Source of the DNA: Paragordius varius
Lineage: Eukaryota > Animalia > Nematomorpha
Direction of reading: 5' to 3'
Length of the DNA: 64,000 nt
Assembly (NCBI GenBank): GCA_964247055.1
Contig: OZ176050.1
Span: 14,136,001 to 14,200,000, forward strand
Under the pieces are notes generated by a model that was given only the letters and a program-made list of their open reading frames with translations, was not told the DNA's origin and did no database searches. Both the position numbers and the translations under genes were made by a program. Shown here piece by piece: positions 3,069 to 51,513 of the stretch (position 1 is its first letter; each line of letters opens with the position of its first letter).

Positions 3069-6000
3069 TCACTACCCCCTTCTAACGAAAGCGGACGGGG
3101 CGAATTCATTCGGGTACCGTCTTTCCTGTATTTTTGTTGGGGAGCTGGTTGTCGCAGGTTCTGGGTATTATCATTATTTGGCCTTGCGGCTGTCGGGGTA
3201 ATCGGTTTGGTTTCGTCACTTGGGTAGATAGTGTAGTTTGATTGAGGTTTGGCAATCGTAACATCATCTTTGACAGCGGTTTCTTTCGTCATCGAGTGTA
3301 GAGAGTTTCTATACGCCCATAGGCTAGTGTTAAATGCTACGTGGGTGGATATAGGATTATTTTTATTCTTTTGTATTTATTTTTAATCGTACCCACTAAT
3401 TCCATCCCATTAATCTTAGGATTGTGCGGGGTAACCTTAATATGTTTTACCCCTAAATTACTTAAGGATGACGTGAATTACTCACTGCTGAAATACGAAG
3501 CGTTATCGACGATTTCTCTTGCAAAACCAAACCTTGCAAACGTTTCTTCTACTTTATGGATTATATTAGCTGCGGTTACCTTTTTCAAAAAACACCCTTC
3601 TGCCCATTTCGAGGCACTATCAATTATCAACAACCAATAATACCGTCTACCAGTCAGGCTATATCAATATGCAAACGCTGCCACACAGCAGCATTATGAT
3701 CCCACTGATACGTGGAATTCTGTGTAACATTCGGCCTACTACGTTGGCACGATTCGCACTAATTACTAGCTTTTACCAGGTCATTTTCTAATTCTGGCCA
3801 ATAACACGTAAATCTGGCCATCGCTTTCATGGTCTATACGAGGTTATGACCGCTGTCTAGGTATTTCACCACCTCTTTTTGGAGAGGCTTTGGAATTATA
3901 ATCCGATCATTTAAACTTAACAAGCCATATTGATATGTAACTCATCTTTACGGTTTACAAACTTTATTAATTCTAAATTCCAGTCATGGTTGTTTAACGC
4001 TCTAATTTTTGTAATATTGGATCTAATGCGGTTTCTTTTCGAATTTCACCTCTGACCGCATGTTACAATTCAAAAATCTCAGGTATCTGGTAACCGTATA
4101 ATCTTCACCATAGGCATCGATTTCTTCAATCGGCCATCTCGATAAATAATCAGCTCTATTTTGAGCCCCTTTTTGATTACTTATTTCAAAATCGTATTCA
4201 TTTATCATATTTATCCATAGTTTTTACCATTTGAATTTCGATCTCTATATATTTCTAAAGATGGTCAGTTATTATCACAAATTTTCTACCATATACAAAA
4301 TATGAAACTTTCTCAACGCAAAAAATATTACTTTTAATTCCTTCTCGATATTGTAATAATTTCGTTCGGCGTTGCTACATGTAGGCATACGCGATCGGTA
4401 TCTTTTCACTATTAACCTCCTGACTTAAATTGCACGCAAATCCTAAATCTGAAGCATCAGTTTCTATTATCGATTTCCTATTCGGATTATATGGTGTTAA
4501 AACATTTTCGCTTAACATTTTCTTGCTAATTAGCTTTTCTCATGTTTCTCGGTCCAAGGCCATCTCGTATTTTTATTACTTAATTCATGTAAAGGACCGA
4601 CTATCATTTGTAATTTTGGTATAAAACGTTCATGAAACGTCAAAAAACCTAAAAAACTACATAATGATATCTATCGGTCTTTTTAGTTCATTAATTGTTT
4701 TGATTTTGCTTTTACATGGGCTGATACCCTTTTTCGATATTTCAAACCCAAAATAGTTTACTGATTCTGCACCTCATTATTTTATCTTGTCTTAATTTGA
4801 ATCCGGCCTTATCGAGACGACTTAATACTTATTTAAATTGTTAAGGTGCTCATTTTCCGTCCTACCAGTCACTAGGACATCATCTAAATATCCGCAAGTT
4901 CCCAAACTTTCAGCCGGCACCTGTTCCATCACCCGTTGAAAGATGATGGGTGCCGTGGCCAGTCCAAACGGCATGGTTTGTATCCAAAAAAATTTTTATG
5001 TGTTAAAATAGTTAACAATTCTTGACACTCCTCTACCACTGGCATCTGGAGGTAAGCATCTTTTAAATCAATTTTTGTGAATGTGAGACCTTCGCCTATT
5101 TTCAACACCTCATCAAACGTGAGGATTATATAGTCATCTTGCAACCACTTATTAATTTCGAAAATCACTGCATACTTAATTCGCCATTCGGTTTAAATAC
5201 ATTAACCATAGGCGTGGCCCATGTCAAAGGTGTGATGTTAGGAAAAACCGGTTCTAAGATGCCTAACTTTTCTAGCCTCGTCAGCTCTTTCTCTACCTTT
5301 TCTCTTAATGGAAAAGGCACCCTGGGACATGGCCATACTTTCGGGATCGCATTCGCTGCAATGCGAATTTTTACAGAGTCCTTATAACACCCTAACTTAT
5401 TTTCGAATAAGTTTTTAAAATTTTTGCAAATCTCATTTAATTTAAGATAAATTTTAATCTGTGGAATTTTAATCTGCAACTTAGCCATTCAGTCCAGTCC
5501 ACAGATCAGTGGTGCCATTCCCATCATTTTGCTTAGGACACATATGTACCCGATCATTTGTTTGCCTTTTACCTGAACGTTAACGCTTGCTATCCCCATC
5601 ATTGGCACCGTGGTGTTGTTGTAAGATTTCACTGACGGTGTCGGTCGTAGTTTGGGTTAACCTTGTTCCCACGTTGTAAAGCTCATTACACTGATATCAG
5701 AACCGGTATCATAGATCAAGTCTTTTTCAGACCGTTTATTATTAATGTTATCAGTAAAGGTTGAGCATTTCGACCTACCTTGACATCTTTCAATAGTTGC
5801 CTATTAAAGTTAGGTTTTTGTCTCTTGGCTATGCACATCCTAGCAAAATGGTTTTTTCCGCATTTGTTGTAGGATTGTCCAACTTGTTGAGTGGGTGTGG
5901 GAAGCCGCAATGTTTGCCGGTAGATGATTTTATATTGTTTGTCGGTAGGGGTTATAATGTTGCAACCGATTGATATTATTATTGCTGCTACTATATCGTC

Positions 6001-15830: not shown

Positions 15831-16965
15831 ATAGTGAACCCCCCCGCCCCCTCCCCTTTTCCCCAAAATAAAATTAAGCGTGTAAAGATAATCTATTTTT
15901 TTATTCAAGGATAACACAATTATTTTATTTTTGATAAATTCGTATACTTTAAATTTTATTCCATAATTAAAAGTAACAATCCCGTTTATATAGGTTAAAT
16001 GGAATATATGATTGTGTAATATTTTGTTCATTTATTATTACATTTTAAAAAATTATAAATGTTTGACCAGAAATATTAACTTATGGGAAAATTATTAAAT
16101 ATTTATTTTACTAATGGGTTTTAGGACAAAATAATTATGGTTCTAATGTAAAAAAAGTAAATAATAATAGCAAAAAAAACAAAATGCTCCAAGCAAAAAA
16201 TTTACGACATATGACCACAAATCGATCATTTTTTCATTCTATGATCTCATCATTGAATATATTTTGTAAAATAATTCGCGAGCAAAAAGCTCGTTTTCAT
16301 TAAAACGATAAAAGATATAAAACAAAAATGTTGTTGCATTCCTAAAAAAAGTATTAATTTTATTGTGCGGTAATTTTATACGGCCCTGCCTAACATCAAT
16401 TTTTTTATTGCGTCAGTTTCCTCTCACTTTATACGTTGCGTTACTTTAAACTAAGTTATTTGAACATAAAAACCAATTACACTCTATTTCCCAATGAAAT
16501 GCTTAAAGTTAATCTTCTTTGTTAATTAAATGATGCGATAAATATTTTTTTTTGATTTTTTTGAACGAGTTTTTATAGGGGCCATTATAATATTTTAAAA
16601 CATATTTTTTTAATGATTTTTTAACAATTTTGGATAACATTTAAAACTTTTAAAGCTGCAATTAAGTAAATGTATACCACCATATAAAATAGTTGGGCTC
16701 CAAAAACGTTTTTTAATTTTAATAGCAAATATGTCTGATTTCCGCCATTTCGTATAATTTAAACAGGGTTGTCCAATACAAATGACTCCGCAAGCCGCAT
16801 TTTAACCCTAAAAACGGCATGCGGCATTCGGAATATATATAAGGATTTAATTCCATAATATTCCAACATAAAACTATAAAATGCAAACACAAAACAACTT
16901 TTTTTATAAGCTGATTTACAATTTAGTTACTAATTTATATAATCTTTATTAGAATATAAACCGGT

Positions 16966-17038
16966 ATGCAATTATTTAAATACTTGGCTATATGCTTCTG
17001 TGGAACTATCCTCCTGTGCTTGATCGAATATGTGAAAG
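16966..17038 (+). CDS. Secreted-protein gene A, exon 1 (signal peptide MQLFKYLAICFCGTILLCLIEYVK-G)
   Basis: ATG, basic N-region, hydrophobic core, V-x-G cleavage context, phase-1 donor AAAG|GTAGAT. Paralogous exon with the same donor at 46425-46497. Confidence 0.75.
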
Positions 17039-18201
17039 GTAGATATAATTTTTTTTATGTGCAGTAGAAACAAACAAAATAAATAAATTTTTATATGAAG
17101 ACCGATATAATGGTAATGGTAACTTAAGCTTACGAGTCGTTTTAAACATTATTTAAAACTTTTACCGTCAATACTCAAGATTTTGATATCCTAAAAATAG
17201 AGATTAAGCGGTAAGATTGTATATCAAAATCAATTATTCTTCCAAATTAGTCATCGGTTTATTGATATAAATTATCAATTTTTATTAAGTTTTGCGTATT
17301 TTAAGTTGAACCCGCATAAAAGCAGAAATTGCGCGATAGAATTATGCTTATTATTTGTTAAAAATCTATTATTTGCCGCGCATATCTTATTTTTAAATTA
17401 AATTAGAGAATTTAAGGCGTTTTGCATCAAATGATTTGTATAAAAATAATTATACATAACAACACCTTTATGTGAATATAGTAAAAATTGGATTGAACAT
17501 CCATAGTTTTAACATATTTTTATAACCTTAATATTGCAAAGTTTAAAAAAAGATTGTAATTAGTTTAAAAAAATGGTTGTCTAATTTTTTGTCTTTCTCA
17601 ATAGAATGCATATTGTACTTATATATACAGATAAATGTATTAATATTCTTATAATTTTAAAACTTGCACATAATATATGCAGGGCTTAGAATTAGAAACG
17701 CAGAAAAAAACCAGGTTTCTTGCATTTTAGTAGGAATGATTTCGTTGGATTAAAACAAACCCGATTCCGGTTCTGCATGTCAAATAAATGTTACCACATT
17801 TCATTTAAAAAATTAAATTTATTGTGTAAATTATTTTATAAAAATCCATATGAATGAGCTAAAAAATTGGCTCATTCAATGTAACTTATGAGGGAAAATA
17901 TATTAAAGGGAGGTGGCCATTTTGAAATTTTTTAGAAAACAAATTTTACCAAATATGGATAACATCGCTCGGCTTTATTTGTTTGTTTTATTGAAAAGTA
18001 TTATTTAAGATTAATAGATAACAATCTTTTTTCACATGTATAAATATGATGAGGGCGAATGTAACTAAACTAAAAGCCAAATAAAAAAACTATGATAGTA
18101 AATGTATAACATTAGAGCATGCAACAGTTTGACTTTACTCAGGGAATCAAATTTTTTAAAAGTTAAGGCACAATAACTAATTTATTTTACTATCACACAT
18201 C

Positions 18202-18236
<35 letters not shown>

Positions 18237-19237
18237 AAGATTATTATGTTAGTTATAATACAAGAGTTCTATATATTATTAATAAATTTTCTGAGTTGCC
18301 AGGCAAATGCTCTCATAAATATAATTACAAGCAATATCAACATAAAATTTTAGATAAAAACTTGTTTTTTAATGCATGCTCCCATAAAAATTATTATGCT
18401 CTATCTAGTCTATCGCCTTGGTAAAAATAATTTATAAATATTGCTTTGATATACGGGTAAACTAGTTAATATATTATAAAGCTTTAAAGACGAAAGAATT
18501 TTAATCAAAGGTGATAGAAATGTTTACCATGAATTTCGTAGAAAACATTCTTATTGACATTGCAAAGCATTTTTATAGTTTTCCTAGCTTAAAGTTTAAT
18601 TCAACATTATTTTAAATTTTTTATGCCATTAGCATATAAATGTACCTTAAAAGCAACATTTTTGCGTTAGTGTTAATAGAACCTAATTATACCATTTGGA
18701 CTTCATAATATCCTACACTTTAAGTTGGTCTTTGAACATTATAAGTTGGTCTATAATTTTTTACGTTTGTATTTAACCATAATATTTGCCATATTTTATT
18801 ATTCTTTAACCTAATTTTCTTATTTTGTTATATATTTATTCACCTAATATAAATTTTACCACTTTTTTGTTTCAAACTAATTTTTTCAATTTAAACAAAT
18901 TATTAACTTATAAATGTTTTACTGAAATGTAATTAATAACCCAAAAAACTTATATATTTTGATTGTGTAATACCTAATTAAACATATATTTTTAATAACT
19001 TAATAAAGAATACGGTTTTTGAATGATCAAAAATTAATATTGATTAAAGGTTTATGTAAAATAAAAACTTGAATTATACATATAACTTAAAGTCACTTTG
19101 AAGTGCTATATTTTATTGGGAAAAATATTTTGTATGCATGCTTTGTTAAAATATTTAATCCTATTTAAAAAAATTTGATCAACCCATTTTATTTTTATGT
19201 TGGTTGGAGCATTGTGAAAACGCTAAATAACATTTAA

Positions 19238-20160
19238 TCATATATTTATAAAAATGGAAAGTGGTGGCTTTGTAATCTGCTTCCGGAAAACCGGTAGACC
19301 CTTTAAATTTAAATGTTGTAAAAATATAATCATTAATGAGTTCCTTGACAATAGTTTGCCCTTTTTTTGAAAAAGGCTCCTAGTTCGGGCCCACCCCTGT
19401 AAAAAACGGTTTTTTTGAAAACATACTTCCACAAAATCGTTTGAGACAATTTTCCGGAAAACGTGTTGGACCATTCATTTTCAATATGATTTTCGTTTAC
19501 TTATTTTCGATTGCGCCGAACATAGTCGGCTCGCTTTTCTAATTTAAGCCTCGTTTTAACCCACTCTTTCCGTAAAATACCATTTTTTTTCAAAAAAAAT
19601 TAGTCCACAAAAATAATTTTTTAAATCTAGTTTTCCCCAAAGTAAAAGACCTTAAAAATTCATTAAGGATTCCCGTTAAAAGGCAAAAAATTTTGTCAAG
19701 CGTTTTTTTTATATTGGCTGCTGGGTAAGGAGGTACCCGCTAAAAACTGATCCGTATCGAAATGGCGTGCCTGTTAAATTTCAGAAGACCTATCAGGCCA
19801 TATGAGTTCAATAGGTGCTTTAAATTTTACCCGTAAAAATCAAAAATTTATGTCGAGGGATTTTGTAAATTAGCTTTTAATTAGGCCCTTTATGCCTGAA
19901 AAATGCGCCACCAAAGAATTATTTTTTAATTTTGAGGCAATTTTTCCAAAAACTAATGAGAGCATCATGATTCCAGGTATTCTCCGTAAAAAGCCAAAAA
20001 AATTTATCAAGCGCTTTTTTTGTATCAGTTTCTGGGTAGGGAGCTATCCGCCTAAAACTGCGCCACAATATAGATATTACGTTGTTTTGGAACTAATTTA
20101 AAGAAAACCATCAGGCCATATGATAGGTGCTTAAAATATTACCAGGCAAAAATTTAGGTC
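19238..20160 (+). mobile_element. Non-autonomous Helitron copy, 3' end missing
   Basis: 5' A|TCATATATTTATAAAAATGGAAA; internal unit shared with 24771-25847, 35600-36675 and 41381-41930. Confidence 0.65.
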
Positions 20161-20248
20161 GTGCGGTTTTTCAAACTTGCCCTCTATGTATGCTTTTTGG
20201 AAATAATTAATGACTTTCTAGCAATGTATACTTATTCATACTGTATCA

Positions 20249-20622
20249 TCTACATATTTATTAAAATGGAAAGTGGTGGCTTTGTAATCTGTTTCCGGAA
20301 AACAGGAAGACCGATTCAAATTCAAATGTCAAAAAAATATAATCATTAATGAATGCATACGAGTTCAATATAGCTTTAAATATTACCCATAAAAAGTAAA
20401 AATTATAGTATAGCGGTTTTTTCCGTTAGCCGTCAATTTGGATTTATACCAGTAAACATATGGTATGAATGCACCGTTTAGAAAATCCTATGAGATCATA
20501 GCTATTAAATAATGTTTCAAACATATATGGATGATTTTATTGATCTCTTTTTTTCTAATAGCTTCCCCCCAGAAGTCCGAAGGACTTCCAGGGGATGTGT
20601 AGCAGCACGAGATTTACGCTAG
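20249..20622 (+). mobile_element. Short non-autonomous Helitron with both termini
   Basis: A|TCTACATATTTATTAAAATGG ... GTGTAGCAGCACGAGATTTACGCTAG|T. 5'-TC and CTAG-3' ends, inserted between A and T, no TSD. Confidence 0.7.
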
Positions 20623-20624
20623 TA

Positions 20625-21240
20625 TACCATTCGCACTTCAAGAGTGTCCTTGAACACTTCAAGTTGGTCCTTGAACAGTTCAAGTTGGTCCTTAAACATT
20701 TCAAGTTGGTCCTTTTTTGTTTTGTTTATAACTTTTATCAATCAAATCGTAAATAATTCATCTACTTTATTGTTTTTAACCTCTTTTCTATTATTTTACA
20801 TAAATTTTACATCCATATCAACTTTTGATCTTTTAGAAACCGTATATCTATATTAATTTCTTATAATAATTTTGGATATTTAAAAGATTTTAACGAAATG
20901 AAAAAATATATAAGTTTTCTGGGTTATTAATTAAAATTTACTATTAAAAACATTTAAAAGTCAATAATTTTGTTCAAATAAAAAAAAATAGTTTGGAACA
21001 AAAAAGTGATTTTTCAATAAAAATTTTTATTTTTAAATGAATAAATATATAATAAATAAAGTAAATTAGGTTAATAAATAATAAAATAAAAAAATAAATG
21101 CAAAAAATTATAATTAAGCAAAATTTATAAATTTTAAGGATCAACTTGAACTGTTCAAGGACCAACTTGAACTGTTCAGGGACCAACTTAAACTGTTCAA
21201 GGACCAACTTGAACTGTTCAAGGACACTCTGCAAATGGTA
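20625..21240. mobile_element. Foldback MITE, type a (21-bp subrepeat TCCTTGAACAGTTCAAGTTGG)
   Basis: Ends TACCATT...AATGGTA flanked by TA; inverted 21-bp tandem arrays at both ends; central spacer shared with 43675-44379 and 47912-48472. Confidence 0.85.
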
Positions 21241-21879
21241 TATATTATAATACAAGTTGATATTATCCAAGATAATATACGCCTTTTAAATTTATGTTCC
21301 CTTTAATTTGTTAATAATTTATATGCTCCGCATTACCATAAAATACGGTTTACAAAATTTTACTAAAATTAAATTCCAAATATTTCATAATCTATTATAT
21401 ATTAAAGATTCTAATCGCAAAATTTCTTCTTTTTTGCGTTTTTTAAATAAGTAACCCATTTGAAAAGGTCAAAAATTTCAAACCTTATATTATAAATCAC
21501 AATTTTAAAAATGTTTGCTCTTCAATATAATATGAATATACTTAAAGTACTTTTTAAAAAATTTACCTTTCACCAAAAAAATTTTATTACCATATTGTTC
21601 GAAAATTTTTGTGTTTTCTTTACGATGTGAACTATTTACCACATAAATGTAAAAATTTGTTTAATATCAATCGTAAAGCTCCAAAACCTCGAGAATCCTG
21701 GTACATTCATCTGAAAGTTTTATAAGGAACTTTTTTGTGCTACCGATTTTGTGCCTGAAATATGTTATACATATAAAAAACAAGGATTAAAAAATAAAGT
21801 TTTTGCCTACTTTTTTGCTATTTTAATTACTGTTATTCCGCAAGTAATTAAATCAGTTTATAATTTTGTCATATAATAG

Positions 21880-22029
21880 GTAATTGCCAAATAACGTATT
21901 ATGGGATCACATATTCAGTAACTAACAGTACGTATCCTATTGAGAGCAATGAAGTGATTACGCTAAACAATGATACAGCTCCTTGTACTGCAAAATTTTA
22001 TATAAAGCTTCACATAAATTGTACTTTGG
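21880..22029 (+). CDS. Secreted-protein gene A, candidate exon 2 (G-NCQITYYGITYSVTNSTYPIESNEVITLNNDTAPCTAKFYIKLHINCTL)
   Basis: 150-nt phase 1-1 exon bounded by taatAG| and TTGG|GTAATT, no stops, less AT-rich than its flanks, 3 Cys and 3 N-glycosylation sequons. Joins exons 1 and 3 in frame. Confidence 0.65.
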
Positions 22030-24395
22030 GTAATTTATTTTATATGATATATATCATAACTAACTTAAAATTATCATACCTTTATATGTATATATATATT
22101 TGATGCCCGAATTTTATATAGTAACGAGGGCTATATTGTCAATTTCGGTAATTGGTTAAAAGGCATTTATTTATCTTTGAATTTATTTAACACTCGAATC
22201 AGGGGATAAAATATCCCAAACAATATTTAAATTTATTTATAAAATACTACTGAAAAAACGATTATTTAAATTTATGCTTCTATTCTAAAAAATTATATAA
22301 ATAAATCATAATATCTAATTAAAATTTAGTAATGGAGAGGTTTAGTATCAAACGACCACGACGCCATTATTATATTACAACATTTTCGCAAATATCGTGT
22401 TTTATTCTAACCTTAAAATTAAGTTATTTTTTTATCAAAATCACATTTAACGTTGATATAAACAGAAAAAGTGGTATATTTTGCATTATTTTTACATTTA
22501 GCCTATGCACACATGTTATGTTGGATAAATTTTTACCTTTGGGGTGTGCCTCTAAATAATTAATATAAGTATTTGCGAACAAAATTTTTTATTATTATAT
22601 TTCGGTTCGGTTATATCAGTGCAAACTTTTGCAAAGGTTTGAATTTATTCCATTTTTTTAAATATTAAATTAAGACAAGCTTGTGGTAACAACTACCCCA
22701 ATTCGAATAGAAGGATTAAAATGAATGCGTTGTATCCAAGTCTTGTGTTAAATATGATAAATAAACAGACGCCATTTCTACACAACTTCTCTTCTATATG
22801 TTATTAAATAAAATCCTAAATCATGTTAATTGTTTAGCCACTATATACACTAAAAAATTTAACAAAATAATTTTTATTTCATGAGATAGCTTATGATCAG
22901 CGTATTCATTTGCCGTTAAAATTTTTATTTGTTTAAGAACTAGTTTTTGAATAATTGAGAGAAATCGAAATCGGGGTAAAATGAAAATTAAGGATAATTA
23001 AGAGTAATTTAAAAAATGATAAAATTTGAGATATTATGGTTTATTATCATTTAGGATATATTTTCAATATAACATTAGACTAAAACGATATAATTAAGGT
23101 TTCTATAAAATTTCAGTTCTAAGATGGCGTTTTTCTCTTACCACATTTAAAATAAAAGACAAAAAAAACTTTCATACTATATTAAAATAATTTTAATTAA
23201 TTATTAATAGCAAACTCACTGATTTCAACATTCATATGTTTTCATTATCAGTAAAAACTTCTATATCGTGTTTTTTTTATTCCTTTTTTTGTCATCTGGT
23301 TATGAGTGTATAAAAAATTATACTGTTTTATTTTAAATCTTACAAGAGTGGAAGTTATAAATTAAATGCAAAATAATAGGATTTAAAAGTAGTGGAAAAT
23401 CTACCAACAATCCGTACATATCCCGGTATAAATATTATGTGTTACAATTTTATAACCAGATGACAAAAAAATGAAAAAATAAAAAACAATATTTTTTAGA
23501 TTTATTTATTGTTTTTTTACTGAATAAAATTAGAATGTTAAGATTTCAACATTAAAATTTTTTAAATTTGTAAGAAACTCAAATCCTAAAAAGAAGAACG
23601 TCATCTTTCTAATTGAAATGTCATATAAACCCTATATATATGATTTTATTTAGTGATACTCACGCGGCCCGCGGGCCGCATGCGGCCCTAAGAGTGCTTT
23701 AAAATTGCCCTATGACCAAATAGATACATAAATTATTTTTTTGAGGAATTTTTAAATAACATAAGCGAATTTTAGGGTATATAGCAATTTATTTTCTTTA
23801 TATTTAATTTTGGTAATTTTTATTTTTTACCTAATTTGAAATGTAGAAAAATTTTCCTAGATTAAAATGATTTCAAAATTTTGGCACACGTTGTTTCTGT
23901 TTCTGTATTTATTTTCTTTTATATTTTAATATTTTCATTGCTTCCTTTTAAAGCAAGCCTTTTATTCAAACCTGCATATTCTTTTCATTTTTTACATCAT
24001 TTTTTGATACTCATTTCCATAATTTCAAATCAACATCATTAAATTTCGTCCTGTTTTTTATACCATATTCTAATATTCCTATTTTTTTAAAAAAATTTAC
24101 ATAATAATTAAACATAAATTAAAAGGATGACATCAAAAACGTAATCCGATGAAATCGCTTTTTTAAAAAAGAATAGGAAGAAATTTTTTTTGTCGTTTTT
24201 AAAAAATGTTGTAACCTGCCTTATATATAGGACCACATAATTATAAAAAATACAATATGGAAAGACATCTCAATATGCACTCTTTGTGAGATTTTGCAAC
24301 GAAAACATAATCAACGAGTATTTATTTTTACCAATGAATAATACCACGAAAAGAAATAACTTCCTAAAAATAATTAGCATTTTTTTAGATAAATG

Positions 24396-27300
24396 TAAGG
24401 TGACCAGACGTCCCGCTTTTTCACACTTTGTCCCGCCTCCCGCTGCGTTTTTGAAATGTCCCGCTTTTTCACGATTATATAAAAAAAGATTTTTTTAAAT
24501 ACATTTAAGTTTTTTATATAAAATTTATTTTTTTTTATCCGTTTAAATTTATTATCATTAGTTATCTTTAAAATCTGTATCAATTTTAAATTAAAGTTTT
24601 TTATTTTTAAATTAAAAATATTTATTTTTTTCAAATTTATATCATATGATTATACACTTTGCTTCCTAATCCTACTGCCAACATTATCACAAAGACAAAT
24701 TAATATCACAACGGTAGCTTATACCTTTACTCCAGAAAATTAAGGTAATATAATATTTTTTATATTAATACTAGCGTAAATCTCGTGCTGCTACGCAGCC
24801 AGAATAAGTCCTTCAGACTTCTGGGGGGGAGGGCTATTTGAAATAAGGGACAATAAAATGATCCACATATGTGGATTATTTCGAAACATTATTTAATAGA
24901 TATGATTTTATAGGAATTTTTAAACGGAGCATTCATACTAATTAATATATTGTTTAATAGGGCGAAAAATAGATTTAAAAAATTATTTTTGTGGACTTTG
25001 TTTTTTGAAAAAAATGGCATTTTACGAAGGGAGCGGAAAAGAGGGATTAAATCAAAAGCGAGACGACTATGTTCGGCGCAATCGAAAATAAGTAAATTGA
25101 ATGATACTTTCTCCAGAAAATTGTCTCTTCAAAGACACGATTTTTGTGGATTTCTGTTTTCAGAAAAACCGTTTTTCAGACGGGGTGGGCCCGAACTGGG
25201 GGCCTATTTCAAAAAAAGGGCGAAGCTATTGTGGGACATTTATTAATGATTATATTTATTCGATATTTGGATTTGATTGGGTTCACCGGTTTTCCGGAAA
25301 CAGATCACAAAGTTACATGAGGAATCAGTTTGCGGGTAGCTCCCTACCCAGCAGCTACCATCAAAGAACCGCTTGACTAAAATTTTTGCCTTTTAACAGA
25401 GAATACGTGGAATCCATATTTTTTTACGGTCTCATACCTAGGGCGAAAAATAGATTTAAAAAATTATTTTTGTGGACTTTGTTTTTTAAAAAAATTGCAT
25501 TTTACGGGGGGAGCGGGTAAAAAGAGGGCCTTAATCAAAAAAAGCGAGCTTACTATGTTCGGCGCAATCGAAAATAAGTAAACAAAAATCATATTTGAAA
25601 TTGAATGGTCCAACACGTTCTCCAGAAAATTGTCTCAAAGACACGATTTTGTCGACTTGTTTTAAAAAAAACCGTTTTTCACACGGGGTAGGCCCGAACT
25701 GGGGGCCTATTTCAAAAAAAGGGCGAAGCTATTGTTGGGGCATTCATTAATGATTATATTTTTTCGAACTTTGGATTTGAATGGGTCTACCGGTTTTCCG
25801 GTACCAGATCACAAAGCCAGCATTTTCCATTTTTATAAATATATAGATTAGTTTAAAATATGAGTACAAAAAGAGGTTGTAAATTTAACGATGATTTAAT
25901 GAAAGAATTTCCTTTTATCAAAAAAACGAAGAATGAATCATTTGTTAATACTTTCTGTTAGGGGTTCACTCTACCACATGGCGGTAAGCATAATATTACA
26001 AAGCATATGGAAATACAGAAACATAAAAGATGTTTAGATATGGTGGCATCATCTCACAAAATGAGGGATTTTTATCGTAAAACCGCTTTTGGAGAGGAAG
26101 AAAAGAATTTGGCACTAGCCCAAGGCGTTTCATCTTTTCACGCGTTAATTACAATCATTCCATTAGATCTATGGATTGTACCTCACATGTTATTCGTGCC
26201 CGTACAAAGGCTGAAGGCATTGTATGCATTGTCCTTTCGCCACATGCATTTTCTGAATACAAAAAGATTTCCTGAAAATTTTCATATCGCCATACTCTGA
26301 TGTATCAAATCAGGAAACAAAAATATTTCCCACGTTAATAAAATATTTTGTCCAGAAACCGGAGTAAAATTAAAATTTTAAGTTTTATTTCTCTACCCGG
26401 TGCGAATTCCGACATAATTTTACTTCAATAATGAATATTCTAGGAAAAAATATTTTAAAAGACAAAATCATCGCATATTGCTGTACACTAATACGAACTT
26501 CGGTGGAAAAGCAAGGAGGGAAACAAAAAGAAATTTTCAGTAATTAACAGATAATCTTAATCCATTATTGACGTTGGGTGTGTAGCGCTTATAACACACA
26601 ACGCTATTCAAACAGCTGCTGATTTGTTACCCCTAGATGTGGAAAATGTAGTTGTTTATGTATATTCCTATTTTTATATACACGGTACGCGTTGAAACGC
26701 TTAAAAAATTCTGTGGAAATGCAGAAGTTCAATATTAAAAAAATGCTTGGATATTGTAAAACTCGTTGGTTTGCTCTTCTGCCAGCTATCGAAGGAATTT
26801 TAAAAAATGATACTTTAAAATCCTATTTTTTTTATCACAGGACAAATGTCCTACAACTTTGGAAAAGTTTTTTGAAAGTGATTCTTCAATATGGTTAGAA
26901 TTCCTACATAATCAAGCTTCTCTCTTTCAAAATGTTATTAAATTGATAGAAAGTGACAAAACTTCGGCAAACGAAGTAGCCAATGAAGTTAGTAACCTAA
27001 AATTCCAATGTAGAAAGGTTATAAAATAATTTTATACCAGTAACCAATCGCAATATTATAAATAATTTAGAAAAACAAGGCTTAATAAATCGCCAAGATA
27101 TCTTGTTCCATTAAAAATGTTTTATACAAACTGTAAAGATTATTGGAAGACTGGACGGTGCAATTTAATGAAATTGATCATTTTTATTGGATAACATTAA
27201 TGGAACCAACGCTGCTACTGAGCGCGTTTTTTCCACAGTAAATCAGATGTGGACATCGGAAAAATCAAATTTAAATGTTGAGACTTTAAAGGCCGTGTTA

Positions 27301-27567
27301 TCTGTCAAATATAATTTGACAAATTCTTGTGAAGACTTCTACAATATTTTATAAAATGATGACAATCTGCTAATACGCATTCACTCAAATAAAAAATATA
27401 CCAATGATTTAAATATTTTTTTATATATAATGTATTTGTGTTAAAAATAAATAAATACTACAATAAATTTTTTGTATAAAAATTTTTGGTTGCCCCACCT
27501 CATAACCCCCCCCCCCCCATTTCTCAGATTTGTCCCGCTTTTTCCTTCAAAAAATCTGGTCACCTTA
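24396..27567 (+). mobile_element. hAT (Blackjack-like) transposon with decayed transposase at ~25860-27400
   Basis: TIR TAAGGTGACCAGA / TCTGGTCACCTTA; perfect 8-bp TSD GATAAATG (24388-24395, 27568-27575); BED-finger-like start MSTKRGCKFNDDLMKEFPF..HGGKHNITKH, LGYCKTRWFALLPA, hATC GTNAATERVFS..WTSEKSNLNVETLK. Confidence 0.92.
24771..25847 (-). mobile_element. Non-autonomous Helitron with a tandemly duplicated ~490-bp internal unit
   Basis: Minus strand A|TCTATATATTTATAAAAATGG at 25847 ... GCGTAGCAGCACGAGATTTACGCTAG|T at 24771. Internal duplication 24950-25320 / 25440-25815. Confidence 0.8.
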
Positions 27568-28886
27568 GATAAATGGCATATCTATGAAAAAATTGGTTTT
27601 GTGGACAGATGGGTGTCCCTCTATCATTGGAATAAAAAAGATTTATTTCCCTTTTGAAAAACAAATATAATTTGCAAAATATTTTAACCCTTTACTGGTT
27701 TATCCATCAGCAACTTGGTTTCGCGTATAAAAGATGAATCACTCAATCCAGTAATTAAAACGGTTGTGGATATAGTTAATCACATCCGTGGCCAAGAATT
27801 CAACGGCCGTATATTTAACAACCATCTGAAATCACAGTGAATTTGACCATTTGTACACCGCTGTGCGATGGCTTAGCCTTACCAAAGTATTAAATAGATT
27901 TTTTGTTTTAAGGCATGAAATTCTATTATTTATAAATTATAACAGAAGGTTTGACGAGTAAATTAATAGTGACAAACAGTGGATTTTATTAGCCTACCTT
28001 TGCGACATTACCGCGGCGGTTATCATTTAACATTTTTATTTAATGAGATAAAATTTAGAATTAAGAAATATTAAAAATTGCTTAAAACTCGTTGAAAATC
28101 CATGGCATATGGATATATCCAATATTAAGCAACTTGAGCATTTCGGTTTTAACAGGCGCATATCATTGAAGAATTCATAGATCTCAAAAATGATTTCAGG
28201 AGGCTATATTCAAGGGAAATTGTGGGGAAGAAAGATATGTAGAGTTTTGGCAAGATGTGCCAAATAAATGTGAGAATTTAAGAAAATGTGCTCCACTTAT
28301 CTTAACTGTTTTTCCTTAAACTTACACGTATGGGCGGCATATTTAAAAATGAAGTATGTCAAGAATACATAAGGAAATCACTTAATCGATGATCATATAC
28401 CACGTATTAAGATTGGCCTGTCATGAGGCGAAACCAAATTCGTCAAAAATTATTGGTTAACATCAAAATAAATGTTAATAAAATATTTTAATTTTTTAAA
28501 TGGTGCGAAACGAGTTTTTAGCTGATTTACATGCGATCCGCAAAAAATTAATTATGCTGATGAGTATTATGCATATGTGTCAAATAGCTATGGAACATTT
28601 GCCATTGGTTCATGGCCCTCAAAAAATAATATATTTTATTTGGCTTGTCAAATTTTTTTGGTGAGTACCACTGATTTTATTTATATATTGAAAATATCAA
28701 AATGATAAATACCATTATATCTCAACTTTTATCATTTTGATCTATCCTTAATTTCACTTTTTTGCCTGATTTCGATTTTCTCTCAATATTTCAAAAACTA
28801 AATCGTAAACAAATAATAATTCGCAAATGAATACTCTGGTCATAAGCTATCTCATGAAAAAAAAGTAACCTCTTTTTTTGCACACA

Positions 28887-28887
<1 letters not shown>

Positions 28888-28927
<40 letters not shown>
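28888..28927. repeat. (TA)n microsatellite (others at ~18207-18232 and ~62171-62192)
   Basis: Seen directly. Confidence 0.95.
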
Positions 28928-29098
28928 AATTTCCAATATAAGCTCTCGAAACCGGAAACATACTCAACATATTACAAACCTATTGTACACATAAGAATTA
29001 CAAATATCAAAATGACATCTTAAATAAAATTAGTTTATATAAACAGTGTTATGATAAGGAAGTATATTTGTATTTTATTTAACTCGATAATATTTCAG

Positions 29099-29283
29099 AG
29101 ATTACGCGTGAAGCCGATTCGTACATTATAAAAAACAAGACAGTAACCCATCATCCTGCGCATCCAGCCGGGATAACTGTTGGAACGGCTCATGATCATC
29201 CCTATATGCCAACTTATAATGTAACATTAAAAGATATCAACACTGCTGTAACTTTAACGGTATATAAATTGCCTCTTGTCTAG
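29099..29283 (+). CDS. Secreted-protein gene A, exon 3 (E-ITREADSYIIKNKTVTHHPAHPAGITVGTAHDHPYMPTYNVTLKDINTAVTLT; then VYKLPLV* if unspliced, or a 24-nt intron at 29260-29283)
   Basis: Acceptor tatttcAG|, phase 1, open frame; indel-free paralog over 53 codons at 51343-51501. Confidence 0.8.
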
Positions 29284-29364
29284 CATCTTTACATAAATTT
29301 TATTATTATAATTATTATGAGTGTAAATGAAAATTATACTGATCAAACTTTGGAAAAACTATAA
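29284..29364 (+). CDS. Gene A, possible exon 4 (HLYINFIIIIIMSVNENYTDQTLEKL*)
   Basis: Requires a 24-nt GT-AG intron. Copy B reads HLDYYYYYYSKNGNYTNQTSKKLQGE* in the same frame after a 28-nt GT-AG segment. Confidence 0.35.
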   Translation, partial: HLYINFIIIIIMSVNENYTDQTLEKL

Positions 29365-31779: not shown

Positions 31780-34490
31780 AAATTCAGACAGCTGTTTCAA
31801 ATAAAATTAACTCCAGCAATTTGTCTTTATGTATTGGTACATAATTTACGCACTAACATAATCGAAGTTATTATAAAAAATGGGAAACTTGACATCAGTG
31901 TAATAGGGATAGCAGAATCCCACATTTCATTAAACAGTCACATATAATATGAAAATCACATCCTATTATACTCAGTATACGATACCCTTAAGCGAAACGG
32001 AGTGTATAGTGACCATATCACTTGCCAACTCATCTGAAATTCACCATATACACAGTGCTTATAATATCACGATTGAACTCCTCTCCACAACCAATAACGA
32101 TATTCCAAATCTATGCCCCTATTAACTCTAACAACGAAGACTCCAAACAATTTTACGAAACCCCCAGCTCAGCTATGAAGAAAGTTCCCCATAAAGACAT
32201 GATATTTGGATTGGGCAACTTTAACGCGATAGTAGGTAATGATAATACACACCAAATCACTGGTGGGAAAGGACTGAGAAGCCAAAAGATAAAGGCTACC
32301 GCCTCATAAAATTTTGCAGCGACATAAATTCTTCATCTCAACCTTTTTTCCAACAACCTAAGAGAAGGCTATACACATGGACCTCATCTTGCAAGAGGCA
32401 CACAAACCAAATCGACTTTATTATCGGTAAAATACAAATCTTCATTTATAAACGTAAACCTACACTTCCGACTCTTATTCTTATCATAAACTCCTTGTAG
32501 CTAAACTTAAAATTAAACTAGTACTCTCACGCAAACCAAAATTTCCTAAATTACTTTTTTCCGCGTTCCCCGAGTTTTCTCTGCTAATATAAAACAGATT
32601 CAAAACACTAGAAATTGACGATACTGAAAATCTTTAAACAATACAAAATATCACTAGAACCACAGCCAGAGAATGCATCCCTATCCAAAAATCCCATTAT
32701 AACAAAATTAAGCTATCACAAAAATGTTTAGATTTAGCGGACAAACGGTGCCAAGCAAAATGCATATTAATACGGCAGAGTACAAATCACCTAACGTAGA
32801 GTTCCAAAAAAGCGCCGGATGACAAAAAAGATCACTATAATCAGCTGTGCTCAAAATTAAAAAACGCTGCTAAATATAACAACAATTACTTTTCTGAAGT
32901 TGATCACATTGAACCACGTAACTCTGAAAGCTACAAAGGCCCAATGAGAAAGGAAGATGGAGATATCATTACAGACAAAAAAACACTGATGTAACAAAGA
33001 GAATTATATTATTAAAACTATACGGCACCAACCCATCAAACGCCGATAAAACAGTAATATCTATCAACATGACCCGCAAATCATCAAATAAGAAGTTGGG
33101 CGCTCAGCCGTTCCCCAAACAACAATCGGAGGCGTACAACGATATCCCAACCCAACTCTTTCGTTTTATCCCAATTCATATCCTAACTAATTTATTCAAA
33201 AAGATATTTGCTCACGCTTCATTCCCCCAAGATTGGTGCAAATCAATACTTTTCCCCATCCTAAAAAGATTCTAAATCATTTAACAACTACAGAACTAAA
33301 GCGCTAATCAACCAAGCCTCATTTTTCTCAAAATGATTCACCGTATCCAAAGTATGATTGAAGCCGAACTTTCTAACACCCAAGCGGAATTTAGAACCAA
33401 TCGCGCAAGCAGGGAGCTGGATATTTGAAAAACAAATCGAATTTCAGAAAAAAACCCATATCTGCTTTATTGATTTTTCAAAGGCCTTCGACAATGTGGA
33501 AAGCACCATCTCAGGTTGAAGTATCAGATCATATTATAAACATTGAATCCCTTTACTCCGATTCATCAACCATAAAAACCCCACACTGCATAAGTAATTG
33601 GATACGAATGAACAATGAGTTACGACAGGGATGCGTCCTCTCACCAACTCTTTTTAACGTTTGCATAGAAATTATATTAAAAAATATAGATAAAGCTAAT
33701 GGCATAAGCATCGCCGGCAATATCATATCACTTCATTATGCTGACGACACTGTACTGCTGTCAAAATCAGTGGACAACCTAAAAAATCTCTTGAAATATC
33801 AACTGTAAGCCAAATATTCGGTCTGATGATCAACTACAAAAAATCTAAAATTATGAATATAAACGCTCAAAATCATTACAACATTTTATCCTTTGACAAC
33901 CAAAAAACGAAGTAGTCTCCTAATACATTTATTGGCAGTCTTATCAATACGATTAACAACAGCACCCCGACATCAAAAGAAAAATAGGAATCGGGAAATC
34001 AAAAATGATGAAATATAAACTATGGTCCATGACATCAAACTTAAAACAAAAATCCGATTAGATAAATCCCTAATATTCCCTAGTATGCTATATGCGTCAA
34101 AAAGTTGGACAATTACAAAGGATGAGAAAAGTTATAACGCCTTCGAAATGTGGTGCTGGCGAAAGATATAACAAATCACCTGGAAACAAAATAAAGAACA
34201 CCGTAATCCTTGACAAAATAAATCCCGAGATAGACCCGATCGTACGTGCTTCAAAAGGAAATTATTATACTTTGGTCACATTATTAGAGCTAATGAATTG
34301 GTATTCCAACTAATGACAGGCAAGGTCAAAGGATCCAGGAAACGTGGGCGCTGCAAGATGCGCTGGATCAAAAAGCTAACCAAAGAAACCAATTTCTCTT
34401 AACAACAGCTAACAGCACTCGATTACAATTAAATAAACGGAGAAAAGATACCTTCGAAAAAGCGACAACGATCTTTGCTATAATAATAAT
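31780..34490 (+). mobile_element. RTE-clade (BovB-like) LINE, near full length, decayed
   Basis: APE: QIYAPINS..GNFNAIVG..QPKRRLYTWTS..NQIDFII; RT: LRQGCVLSPTLFN..HYADDTVLL; C-terminus AFEMWCWRK..LYFGHIIR..RGRCKMRW; short (ATA)n tail ~34480. Confidence 0.9.
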
Positions 34491-35599: not shown

Positions 35600-36675
35600 A
35601 AATAAACTCACTATTTAAATTTTTTCATGGTTAAGGGTAATATTTTAAGCACCTCTTAATATGGCCTGAGGGGTTTTTTAAAATTTAGCCCCAAAGGCAG
35701 GCTATTTCGATATGACGGGGTTGTTTTTAGCGGGTGTCTCCTCACCCAGCAGCCAATATAAAAAAATGCACGACTAATATTTTTTTCTTATAACGAGGAA
35801 TACCTGGAATCCTCATTAATATTTTACTGTCTCATACCTTGGGAGAAAAATAGATTTAAAAATTGGGGACATAGTTTTTTTCAAAAAAATGACATTTTAC
35901 GGGGGGAGCGGGTAAAAAGAGGACCTAAATTAAAAAAGCAAGCCGACTATGTTCGGCGCAATCAAAATTAGTAAAATAACATTAAAATTGATTGTCCTGC
36001 ACGTTCTCCCGGTTGTCTCAAAGACACGATTTTTGTGGACCTCTGTATTAAAAAAAACCGTTTTTCACACGGGATCCCTAACTGAAGGTTTATTTCAAAA
36101 AAAGGGCAAACCTATTGTCGGGACATTCATTAATAATTATATTTGCTTGGATTTGAATGGGTTCACAGGTTTTCCGACAGATCACAAATCCCCATAACGG
36201 ATCTGTTTTTAGCAAATAGCTCCTTACTTAGCTACTATCATCAAAGAATCGATTGACTAAAATTTTTTCCTTTTAACAGGAAAAACGTGGAATCCTTATT
36301 AAATTTTTACGGTCTCATACCCCGGACGAAAAATAGATTTAAAAAATCATTTTTGTGGACATTGTTTTTTAATAAAATGGCATTTTACTGGGGGATCGGA
36401 TAAAAAGAGGGCCTAAATTCAAAGAACAAGCCGACTATGTTCGGCGCAATCAAAAAAGTAAAAAACATTATATTTAAAATCGAATGGTGCAACACGTTTT
36501 TCGGGACTTATGTTTTCAAAAAACCCGTTTTTACAATGTTTGGGCCCGAACTGGGGGTCTAATGCAAAAAAAGGGCAAATATTCTCAGGGCAATAATTAT
36601 ATTTTTCGATATTTTGACTTGAAGGGGTCTACCGGTTTCCTGGAAACAGATCACAAAGCTAGCATTTTCCATTTT
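35600..36675 (-). mobile_element. Helitron-family copy with two internal units, termini eroded
   Basis: 35830-36190 and 36320-36670 match the internal unit of 24771-25847. Confidence 0.7.
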
Positions 36676-36711
36676 TTGGTGATATTGTTTACGCTGAAGT
36701 GTATATTATTA

Positions 36712-41380: not shown

Positions 41381-41930
41381 AAAATTTATATATTTATAAA
41401 AATGGATAGTGGTGGATTTGTGATCTGTTTCCTAAAAACGGGTAGACCCATTCAAATCCAAATATCGAAAAAATATAATTTATGAATGCCCTGACAATAG
41501 ATGCCCTCTTTTTAAATTAGGCCCCCAGTTCGGGTCCACTTCGTGTAAAAAATGGGTTTTTTTGAAAACAGAAGTCCACAAAAATTGTGTCTTTGAGACA
41601 ATTTTCCGAAAAACGTGTTGGACCATTCGATTTCAAATTTATTTTTTTTTATTTTCAATTTTATAGTCGGGTCCTTCTAATTTCGGCCCTCTTTTTCCCC
41701 GCTCCCCCCGTTAAGTGACATTTTTAAAAAGTCCACAAAAATATTTTTTGAATCGTTTCGCCCAAGGTATGAGACCCTAAAAATTCAATAAGCATTCCCG
41801 TATTCCCTGTTAAAAGGCATATATTTTAGTCAAGCGTTTTTTATATTGACCGCTGGGTAAGGAGATAGTAGCTAAAACCTGCCCCTTCATATAAAAATAG
41901 CGTGCCTTTGGGGCTAAATTTTCATAAAAA
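41381..41930 (+). mobile_element. Helitron-family copy, 3' truncated
   Basis: ATTTATATATTTATAAAAATGGATAG start followed by one internal unit. Confidence 0.65.
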
Positions 41931-43674: not shown

Positions 43675-44379
43675 TACCATTTGCACTTCAGAGTGTCCTT
43701 GAACAATTCAAGTTGGTCCTTGAACAATTCAAGCTGGTCCTTGAACAGTTCAAGTTGGTCCTTGAATAATTCAAATTGGTCCTTGAACAATTCATGGTCC
43801 TTGAACTTTTTTGTTTTATTTTTAACTTTTATCAATCAAATCGAAAATAATTCGTCTATTTTATTGTTTTTAACCTATTTTCTATTATTTAACATAAATT
43901 TTAAATCGATATCAACTTTTAATCTTTGACAAACCGTATATCTTTATTAATTTCTAATAAATTTAGATATTTATATGATTTTAACACGAAATGAAAAAAT
44001 ATATAAGTTTTCTGGGTTATTAATTAAAATTTTTCATTAAAAACATTTAAAAGTCAATAATTTTGTTCAAATGAAAAAAAAATAGTTTTAAACAAAAAAA
44101 AGTGGTTTATCAATAAAAAAATTTATTTTTAGAATAAATATATAATAAATAAAGAAAATTAGGTTAATAAATAATTAAATAAAAAAAAATGCAAAAATTA
44201 TGGTTAAATCAAAATTTATAAATTTTAAGGACCAACTTGAACTGTTCAAGGACCAACTTGAATTGTTCAAGGACCAACTTGAACTGTTTAAGGACCAACT
44301 TGAATTGTTCAAGGACTAACTTGAATTGTTCAAGGACCAACTTGAAATGTTTAAGGACACTCTGGAAGTGCAAATGGTA
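43675..44379. mobile_element. Foldback MITE, type a
   Basis: TACCATTTGCACTTC...GAAGTGCAAATGGTA, TA flanks, 21-bp arrays on both arms. Confidence 0.88.
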
Positions 44380-46424
44380 TATATATATATATTTGTGTTT
44401 TTTCTATTTTTTAAGCTGGTTCTTATAAGGGGTTTACTGTACTGCTTTACACATTTTTGAAATAACTTCTCTAACCAAGTATTTAAGCGCAAAACCTTTT
44501 CAGCTACAATTAATTATGATCCATTAGATGCCATATATAATAATCATTGCGATAAAGTCAATTGTTATTAAACTTATTTATTGTAGCGTACCACTGTTTC
44601 GAATGGCTACAAGCTACTAGTAAAAATATCAGTCCTGGTTTTTCTTATTTGATGGGCGGTTTTTAATTCGGTTATCCAAAAATAGAGTTTAGTTTGAAAC
44701 AAATTTCTCATTTAATTGCATGATTTCTAATGCGATTGCCCTATATTCTTCTGATCAATTTGAATTATTAAGCCGTAGCTTATTTAAAATAATTTTATTT
44801 TTTTGTATGTCAAAAAATAATAACGTGGGTAATTTCATGTGTGCGTTTTGTGAACAAAAAATCTATTTATTATATGGCCAAATACATTTATCATAAGCTA
44901 GTTTTCGTTGTATAACATGTATAAATTATTTATATACTTAATATATTTTAATTACTTTTTCCCATACTTTTGGCATATTCCTCTAAATATTTTGATCAAA
45001 TAGTAATCCATACATATAATTTCTTGTTTGAACAAGTGAGCGGTTTATGGGTACATATTGGATAACATCATCCTATAGCGCCTGTGCCAAATTTGGGTTC
45101 TATTTTTGGTGTTTATTTACTCAACTGGAATCGTGTCTTTTATAGCCCCCCCCCCTTCCCTTCCTCCCCAAAATAAAATTAAACGGGTTAAGATAATCTT
45201 TTCTTATTCAAGGATAACACAATTATTTCATTTTTTAAAAAAAAATTCGCATACTTTTAAAATTTTATTCCATAATTAAAGGTAACAATCCGTTTATATT
45301 GGTTAATTAGGCTATATGATTTTGAGTTATATTTTAGTTATTTATTATTACATTTTAAAAGATTATAATTATTTGACCAGAAATATTAACTTATACGAAA
45401 TTTATAAAATATATATTTTACGAATGGGTTTTAGAATGAATAATCAGGATTATAATGTAAAAAAGTGAATAATGGCAAAAAATAAAATCGCGCCAAGCAA
45501 AAAATTTACGACATATGTCTTCAAATAGAGCATTTTAATGAATAAATTGGTGTTTTAAATAATTTTTTTAATAAATACTGTTGTGCCATTTTTTATTATA
45601 AAAATCTCTATAAGAAAAATGGAAAACGGACATTTTCATTAAAATGATATAAGATATAAAGACATAAATGACTATCCTTAAAAAGTTTTTAAACAGGAGT
45701 GTCCAACATGCTTTTTTCAGCACGCAAAAGTGCTCTAAAAATGGAAAAGTAATAAAAAATTAGATTTTAATTAAATATTTACGATTATATAGAAGATATA
45801 TCACTCAGAATCGGGCTTAAAATAAATAAATAAAAATCCCACATTATCAAAGCGCCTCGAAGCTATTTGTGTTGGAAATTCTTGATTAAAGGATTGTACT
45901 TTTATTTCAATTTTAATTTTTATTGAGTCGGTGTCCTATTATAACCACTTTATACGTTACATTTCTTGAGCCACGGTATACTTGATGAGCATAAAAACCA
46001 ATTACACATCTCCGTTTCGTAATGAAATACTTAGTTGTTTGCTTAATTGATACATAATCGCAAATAAAAATTTGATATAATATAGATTTTTTTAACAACA
46101 TATAATTGAATTATTAGTATTAATTAACCATTAAATTAGAGTGAGCAGTGACATATATAGGCGGTCAAATTAGTTATATTTGACGAAAATTTTACTTAAA
46201 CATATAGGATATCTTCTTTGTTGATTAAATGATGAAGATAAATAATATTATCTATTTTTCTAAATATTTTAAGCGAGTTTTGTTAAAAGCACATTTATAT
46301 TTCAGACCATATTACTATAACTTATCATAATTTTGATTGCACAAATATGTCGTGTGCATATCAACATTTGATCAAATCAAAAGGCTTTATCAGAATACTA
46401 CACATTTTTAGAATATAATCCAGC

Positions 46425-46497
46425 ATGCAATTATTCAATCACTTGGCTTTCTGCTTCTGTGGAGCTTTCCTCCTGTTCCTGATCGAATAGGCAGAAG
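46425..46497 (+). pseudogene. Gene B exon 1 (MQLFNHLAFCFCGAFLLFLIE*AE-G), nonsense at codon 22
   Basis: Gap-free alignment to 16966-17038; TAT>TAG at 46488-46490; donor GAAG|GTAGAT retained. Confidence 0.75.
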
Positions 46498-51340: not shown

Positions 51341-51513
51341 AGATTACATGTGGAGCCAATTCGTACATTATTAAAGACAAGGATGTAACCAGTGATCCTA
51401 AGGATCCAGCCGGGATAACTGTTAAAACGGTTCCAGGCAATCCCAATATGCCAACTTATGTGGTAACATAACAAGCTATCGACTCTGCTGTAACTTTAAC
51501 GGTTTTTATATAA
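51341..51513 (+). pseudogene. Gene B exon 3 homolog (ITCGANSYIIKDKDVTSDPKDPAGITVKTVPGNPNMPTYVVT*QAIDSAVTLT...)
   Basis: Acceptor ttttAG|; gap-free to 29099-29259; TTA>TAA at 51469-51471. Confidence 0.78.

Follow-up and report, generated by a model that had tools for sequence, protein, structure and literature searches.

A family of candidate small secreted proteins with short, widely spaced exons in an AT-rich Paragordius varius genome

The window analysed here is a 64,000-nt stretch of the Paragordius varius genome (contig OZ176050.1, C1 below; C1:14136001-14200000, forward strand). It holds an unannotated gene, which we call copy A, whose three short exons lie between positions 16966 and 29283 of the window. 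A preliminary description, made from the letters alone, had drawn copy A as a single hidden gene for a small secreted glycoprotein. Single it is not: we found about ten paralogous loci, copy A among them, spread over three contigs. We read copy A as an intact member of a taxon-restricted, orphan gene family for small secreted proteins, and give this reading a probability of about 75%. Its parts, in window positions, are:

16966..17038, + strand: exon 1 of copy A, ATG, 24 further codons and 1 nt
17039..21879, + strand: intron 1 of copy A, phase 1, 4841 nt
21880..22029, + strand: exon 2 of copy A, 150 nt, symmetric phase 1-1
22030..29098, + strand: intron 2 of copy A, phase 1, 7069 nt
29099..29283, + strand: exon 3 of copy A, 2 nt, 60 codons and TAG

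Exon 1 starts with the ATG at 16966 and ends at the donor G/GTAGAT (17038/17039; the slash marks the exon border). Exon 2 lies between the acceptor TAATAG, directly before 21880, and the donor G/GTAATT at 22029/22030, while exon 3 follows the acceptor TTTCAG before 29099 and closes with the TAG stop at 29281-29283. The coding parts of 73, 150 and 185 nt sum to 408 nt, or 135 codons and a stop, with both junctions in phase 1. These borders and the in-frame translations, which match the peptide proposed in the preliminary description, bear out the predicted in-frame joining of the three exons to 135 residues, and the three-exon model of copy A is very probably right. The claim that a gene had been missed here by the annotation and the open reading frame (ORF) track is supported as well, and we regard it as a real unannotated three-exon gene. 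The exons have a G+C content of 33-39%, against about 25% around them and in the window. Counted on the translation, the mature part has the three Cys and five N-x-S/T sequons described before, together with six His, and is rich in Thr, Ile, Asn, Tyr and Val. Exon 3 carries a conserved core, D-P-A-x-P-x-G-I-T-V.

Paralogs and sequence evolution

Relatives of copy A were sought by iterated profile searches of the genome (110.6 Mb, 44 contigs). BLAST showed that the whole locus, introns included, is present three times (copies A, B and C), with colinear introns. A profile built from A and B gave one weak extra match, copy D, on the minus strand at C1:14239614 (19 bits, where noise in 120 kb reached at most 7.8). 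A hidden Markov model (HMM) placed exon 2 of copy D about 1.9 kb upstream of that match, with the same borders and three Cys; two earlier candidates for this exon, near 4031 and 8373 of sequence piece L008, had been discarded on reading. A signal-peptide-like exon 4.3 kb farther upstream was a candidate for the first exon of copy D and was confirmed by its homolog in copy E. Profiles including D recovered copy E at E-values of 3e-19 and 1e-7, and the following round added F, G and J on contig C2 and H and I on contig C9 (E = 1e-15 to 1e-21).

The exon layout is the same throughout this set. An open exon 2 is found at nine loci (A, B, D, E, F, G, H, I and J). Its acceptor (AG) and donor (GT) occupy the same positions in each of them, its length is 150-162 nt, always a multiple of three, and its phases do not vary. 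In all nine it starts AG/G followed by T or A, then x-Cys, and ends Cys-x-[L/M] plus one base before the GT. Its only invariant residues are the three Cys, which in copy A are exon residues 2, 35 and 47. Eight copies (A, B, D, E, F, H, I and J) have a last exon of about 60 codons; that of copy G is frameshifted. In copy I (within C9:5018001-5028000, minus strand) the TAA stop of its relatives is replaced by AAA, and the frame, as read by eye, continues for several dozen codons. In seven copies (A, B, D, E, G, H and I) we found a first exon, which spans 20-26 codons, encodes a hydrophobic core and ends G/GT. Since this architecture is conserved down to about 20% amino-acid identity, we conclude that the reading frame and the gene model are real.

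The family loci are at 14.15-14.53 of 15.23 Mb on C1, at 14.53, 14.54 and 15.03 of 15.20 Mb on C2 and at 5.01-5.02 of 5.07 Mb on C9. Every one thus lies no more than about 1.1 Mb from the end of its contig with the highest coordinates, and both C9 loci no more than 60 kb from it; the family may prefer chromosome ends.

The two close relatives of copy A differ in their fate. Copy B (C1:14527577-14533005) has three intact exons with the same ATG, donors and acceptors as A. Copy C, which lies in the window, is a pseudogene: it has no exon 2, the substitution rate of its exons equals that of its flanks, and its remaining exons carry stops:

46425..46497, + strand: exon 1 of pseudogene copy C, in-frame TAG at codon 22
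51341..51513, + strand: exon 3 of pseudogene copy C, in-frame TAA at codon 43

As a pseudogene, copy C provides a built-in neutral control for tests of selection.

Between A and B, no insertion or deletion was found in 384 exon nt, versus 46 in 2200 aligned non-coding nt (8.0 expected, P = 3e-4), and in simulations of the observed amount of neutral change the frame stayed free of stops in only about 0.02 of cases. Copy A therefore shows the signs of coding constraint against a diverged paralog, namely the lack of stops and indels and the conservation of splice sites. At the same time, exons 2 and 3 of A and B have diverged by 25%, compared with 16% in the non-coding flanks (Fisher P = 2.7e-4). 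The ratio of non-synonymous to synonymous substitution rates between A and B (dN/dS, Nei-Gojobori) comes to 0.26 in the signal-peptide exon but to 0.96 in the mature part, and across eight pairs in the family the mature-part value ranges from 0.6 to 1.5. Changes assigned to each lineage in exon 3 and in its flanks numbered 21/161 and 15/245 for A, 19/161 and 17/245 for B, and 8/161 and 12/245 for C. By these counts the intact copies A and B have changed about twice as fast as their own flanks, whereas the dead copy C matches its flanks. The suggestion that paralogs differ almost only by non-synonymous changes was not upheld (N:S of 66:24 between A and B and 24:5 on the A lineage, with a neutral site ratio of 0.77). 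Overall, the exon pattern fits a rapidly diversifying secreted family and may reflect diversifying selection.

Transcripts were sought by searching sequencing runs for exon 3 plus flank and by placing the contigs of four runs on 16700-22300. Exon 3 with its flank was found in three runs, none of them RNA; X1 and X3 are DNA runs, because introns are covered as well as exons. Contig depth in the DNA runs shows the exons of copy A to be low-copy. X1 also carries an alternative allele, which differs by several linked changes close to exons 1 and 2 but outside them (16904-17061 and 22163-22186) and by none within them, in counts too small for significance. Run X3, which is labelled as another organism, contains the identical sequence at low depth.

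Several observations weigh against an intact, secreted copy A. Runs X4 and X5, which are RNA by guess, gave no contigs on 16700-22300, and exon 3 words are absent from X4-X8, in each case with no positive control that the runs represent the animal well. Relative to B and C, exon 3 of copy A has a 4-bp deletion that alters the last residues. A dN/dS near 1 is also what dead DNA yields, and we estimate, without simulation, a chance of about 0.1-0.2 that the A lineage on its own escaped a stop by luck. The signal-peptide call was made by eye and with a hydropathy scan, not with a trained predictor. AlphaFold models of single exons were uninformative (pLDDT, its per-residue confidence, of 43 and 52).

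Some of these points would also be expected if the family were real but copy A itself silent or recently dead, having not yet acquired a stop or frameshift. This account could draw on the lack of a match in the presumed RNA runs and on the rewritten last codons, as well as on the death of the neighbouring copy C, the large transposon insertions in both introns of A and the 24 non-synonymous to 5 synonymous changes of the A lineage in exons 1 and 3, which do not differ from the neutral site ratio. We nevertheless hold it to be unlikely. The ATG, all splice sites and the three Cys of A are intact, and its exon 3 changes at about twice the flank rate, whereas the dead copy C has equal rates. In addition, the five new His described below, within 16 residues, are improbable by random mutation (P of about 0.002, before post hoc correction).

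Predicted secretion and copy-specific features

If copy A is an intact gene, its first exon bears on where the product goes. The exon 1 peptide has a Lys at residue 5 in the n-region, a hydrophobic core of 15 residues whose best 10 average a hydropathy of 2.7, and then V-K-G, with the codon of the Gly split by the phase-1 intron. No other signal-peptide-like phase-1 exon was found in a scan of 16000-21800. The ATG, the frame and the donor of exon 1 are kept in copies B and C, and small residues at -3/-1 (V-[KRQ]-G or I-[NR]-G) are kept in seven paralogs. The classical combination of a positive n-region, a hydrophobic h-region (7-15 residues) and small -3/-1 residues is thus present in copy A, and the layout recurs across the seven copies with a first exon. 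This layout and the homologous exons support the earlier proposal of an N-terminal signal peptide, at least in the sense of a signal-peptide-like exon. A signal peptide on its own exon, followed by a phase-1 intron, is typical of secreted proteins. Together, the signal-peptide exon, the phase-1 introns and the symmetric 1-1 exon form an architecture of extracellular proteins.

Alternatively, the core could be an uncleaved N-terminal anchor, which would make the product a small type II membrane protein. The 15-residue core and the manner in which the signal peptide was called leave some room for this. However, that core is short for a membrane span, the V-x-G residues that follow it are kept in seven paralogs, and the separate first exon with its phase-1 intron is, again, typical of secretion. 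We consider an anchor very improbable and keep to a secreted product.

Upstream of the first exon, copies A to E have in common a TTTAG 13-17 nt 5' of the start codon (within 16948-16965 in copy A), which is not seen in the C2/C9 subfamily. It could act as an acceptor, to which either a 5' non-coding exon or a spliced leader is joined.

The sequons vary far more than the exon layout does. Copy A has five, B none and D four at other positions, and the C2/C9 subfamily keeps a single N-G-T; the sequons of A are accordingly not conserved in its relatives, and glycosylation is not a family trait. The label 'glycoprotein' thus stands for copy A as far as its five sequons go and would be a prediction for that copy, and it fails for the family, as sequon positions are copy-specific and not conserved between subfamilies.

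The His cluster noted in the preliminary description is likewise present in copy A and is a feature of that copy only. Five His fall within 16 residues of exon 3 (29149-29199); none of them occurs in B, whose exon 3 has no His, or in C. At least five His would arise by random mutation with P of about 0.002, before allowing for the residue having been chosen afterwards. One could imagine that copy A newly gained a His-rich, metal- or pH-sensitive patch in a set of secreted ligands that diversify near chromosome ends at an interface with another organism (e.g., the host, if the animal is a parasite). We rate this idea as quite unlikely. If true, copy A would be a fresh neofunctionalisation inside an entirely new protein fold.

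Database searches and intron insertions

As the preliminary description had stated, the protein belongs to no recognised family. Exon pieces of A and B had no match in Pfam, transposon families included, so that a transposable-element protein, the match that would have told against a host gene, was not found there. Sequence profile searches of the PDB gave only E-values of at least 0.1, and the ESM Atlas gave no usable match for either exon. An exhaustive search of 1.84 billion representative proteins with the exon 3 profile returned neither a self-match nor an ortholog, which indicates that the gene is not in that collection. The seven matches it did return, to long HYR, Calx-beta, cadherin-like or TPR multi-repeat proteins, run through a short motif resembling P-A-G-I-T-V and were rejected with hhalign. 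An HYR or immunoglobulin (Ig)-like domain was discarded as well: hhalign gave the best match a probability of 13% over 21 columns, which is not homology. The mature part may, given its composition, have a beta-sandwich-like fold.

The introns of copy A are about twice as long as those of B (4841 versus 2457 nt for intron 1 and 7069 versus 2572 nt for intron 2), because of transposon insertions. Colinearity with B delimits two A-specific blocks in intron 1, at about 18692-19108 and at 19224-21282, and one insertion in intron 2. The following elements were resolved:

20634-21237, intron 1: foldback repeat with inverted repeats
23651..28673, no strand assigned, intron 2: 5.0-kb insertion, absent from the empty site in B

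The foldback element was already part of the preliminary description. In the DNA runs, the summed contig depth over the segment 18757-21374 of intron 1 is as much as about 1000-fold the exon depth, which makes this segment a high-copy repeat. Repeat families of this intron recur in inverted orientation at 24768-25848 (intron 2) and at about 35600-36700, 41400-41900 and 43700-44400. The 5.0-kb insertion is flanked by an 8-bp target-site duplication, ATTTTATT, at 23643-23650 and 28674-28681, and has terminal inverted repeats, YAGTGRTACTCAC. Read against the empty site, these are hAT-like hallmarks, in agreement with the hAT nest placed in the introns by the preliminary description. Pfam returned no transposase domain and no family for the ORFs of the intron insertion, so the hAT call is based on the target-site duplication and the terminal repeats. 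Elsewhere, the window is gene-poor and transposon-rich; an ORF at 33425-33808 encodes an RVT_1 reverse-transcriptase domain (E = 1.7e-12).

In such a transposon-rich region, and with copies on three contigs, the exons might belong to a transposable element, or have been captured by one and spread with it. We find this scarcely credible. There are only about ten copies genome-wide, at low-copy depth, and no transposon protein family was matched. What unites copies A, B and C is host-like colinear introns and flanks, not element termini, and the transposon insertions arrived later, inside the introns. About ten loci without a transposon domain do not make a mobile-element protein. Finally, short exons with no RNA and no database relative might be chance ORFs in AT-rich DNA joined by chance GT and AG sites, an option that can practically be dismissed, as the same layout recurs with identical phases and invariant Cys in at least nine loci down to about 20% amino-acid identity, A and B differ by no stop and no indel, and a random 50-codon frame is open only about 1% of the time (a hand calculation from the local non-coding base composition).

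Proposed role and comparison with known systems

For an intact and secreted copy A, we infer from the sequence a scheme that covers secretion, cleavage site, disulfides, glycosylation, diversifying selection and biological role. The signal peptide encoded by exon 1 would direct the nascent chain into the endoplasmic reticulum, and cleavage would follow the conserved Gly that spans the junction of exons 1 and 2 (V-K-G/N-C). A mature chain of about 110 residues would result, with many Thr, Ile, Val and Tyr and probably much beta structure. It would be held by the three Cys of exon 2: Cys35 and Cys47 may close a hairpin or loop, leaving the N-terminal Cys free for pairing between chains. The product would then leave the cell carrying variable N-glycans. 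The family itself may have expanded by segmental duplication near contig ends. Its surface residues would turn over at or above the neutral rate while the reading frame, the splice sites, the signal peptide and the Cys stay fixed, a pattern that would suit proteins whose partner, for example a host, a pathogen or a mate, itself keeps changing. A role in host interaction is only a possibility.

These loci make up a protein family that has neither an annotation nor a database entry, with about ten loci, eight of them apparently intact, in a poorly studied AT-rich genome. They illustrate how secreted genes with short exons escape ORF tracks in an AT-rich animal genome. They also combine a strict architecture and three fixed Cys with an amino-acid turnover that is near-neutral or faster. 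With this combination, the family may be considered for a part in extracellular recognition or in contact with a host, and is worth seeking by secretome proteomics.

How does the family compare with known systems? The HYR, Calx-beta and cadherin-like Ig repeats have a similar short strand motif (P-A-G-I-T-V-like). Only about 20 columns align, however, and the scores were summed over many repeats. The micro-exon genes (MEGs) of schistosomes are similar in layout: there too, a signal-peptide exon precedes one or more symmetric phase-1 exons, and genes go unannotated because their exons are short. In contrast to the dozens of 6-100-nt cassettes of MEGs, the genes described here have three ordinary exons (73, 150 and 185 nt in copy A), with no hint of exon shuffling.

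Conotoxins, as well as the three-finger and phospholipase A2 (PLA2) toxins of snakes, have exons that evolve faster than their introns. The family resembles such Cys-framework toxins, which include defence peptides as well, in combining a conserved signal peptide and Cys framework with a hypervariable mature region, and in an exon substitution that exceeds that of the flanking introns. It differs from them in having only three Cys on a longer chain rich in Thr, Val and Ile, with no sign of a venom or gland setting and no homology.

Parasites and other invertebrates have taxon-restricted, fast-evolving families of secreted proteins, for example the excretory-secretory orphan families of helminths. 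No sequence similarity was found, in the searches described above, between families of this kind and the copy A family. They are nevertheless alike in having no outside relatives, in the signal peptide on its own exon and the phase-1 introns, in clustered paralogs with pseudogenes, and in a dN/dS near 1.

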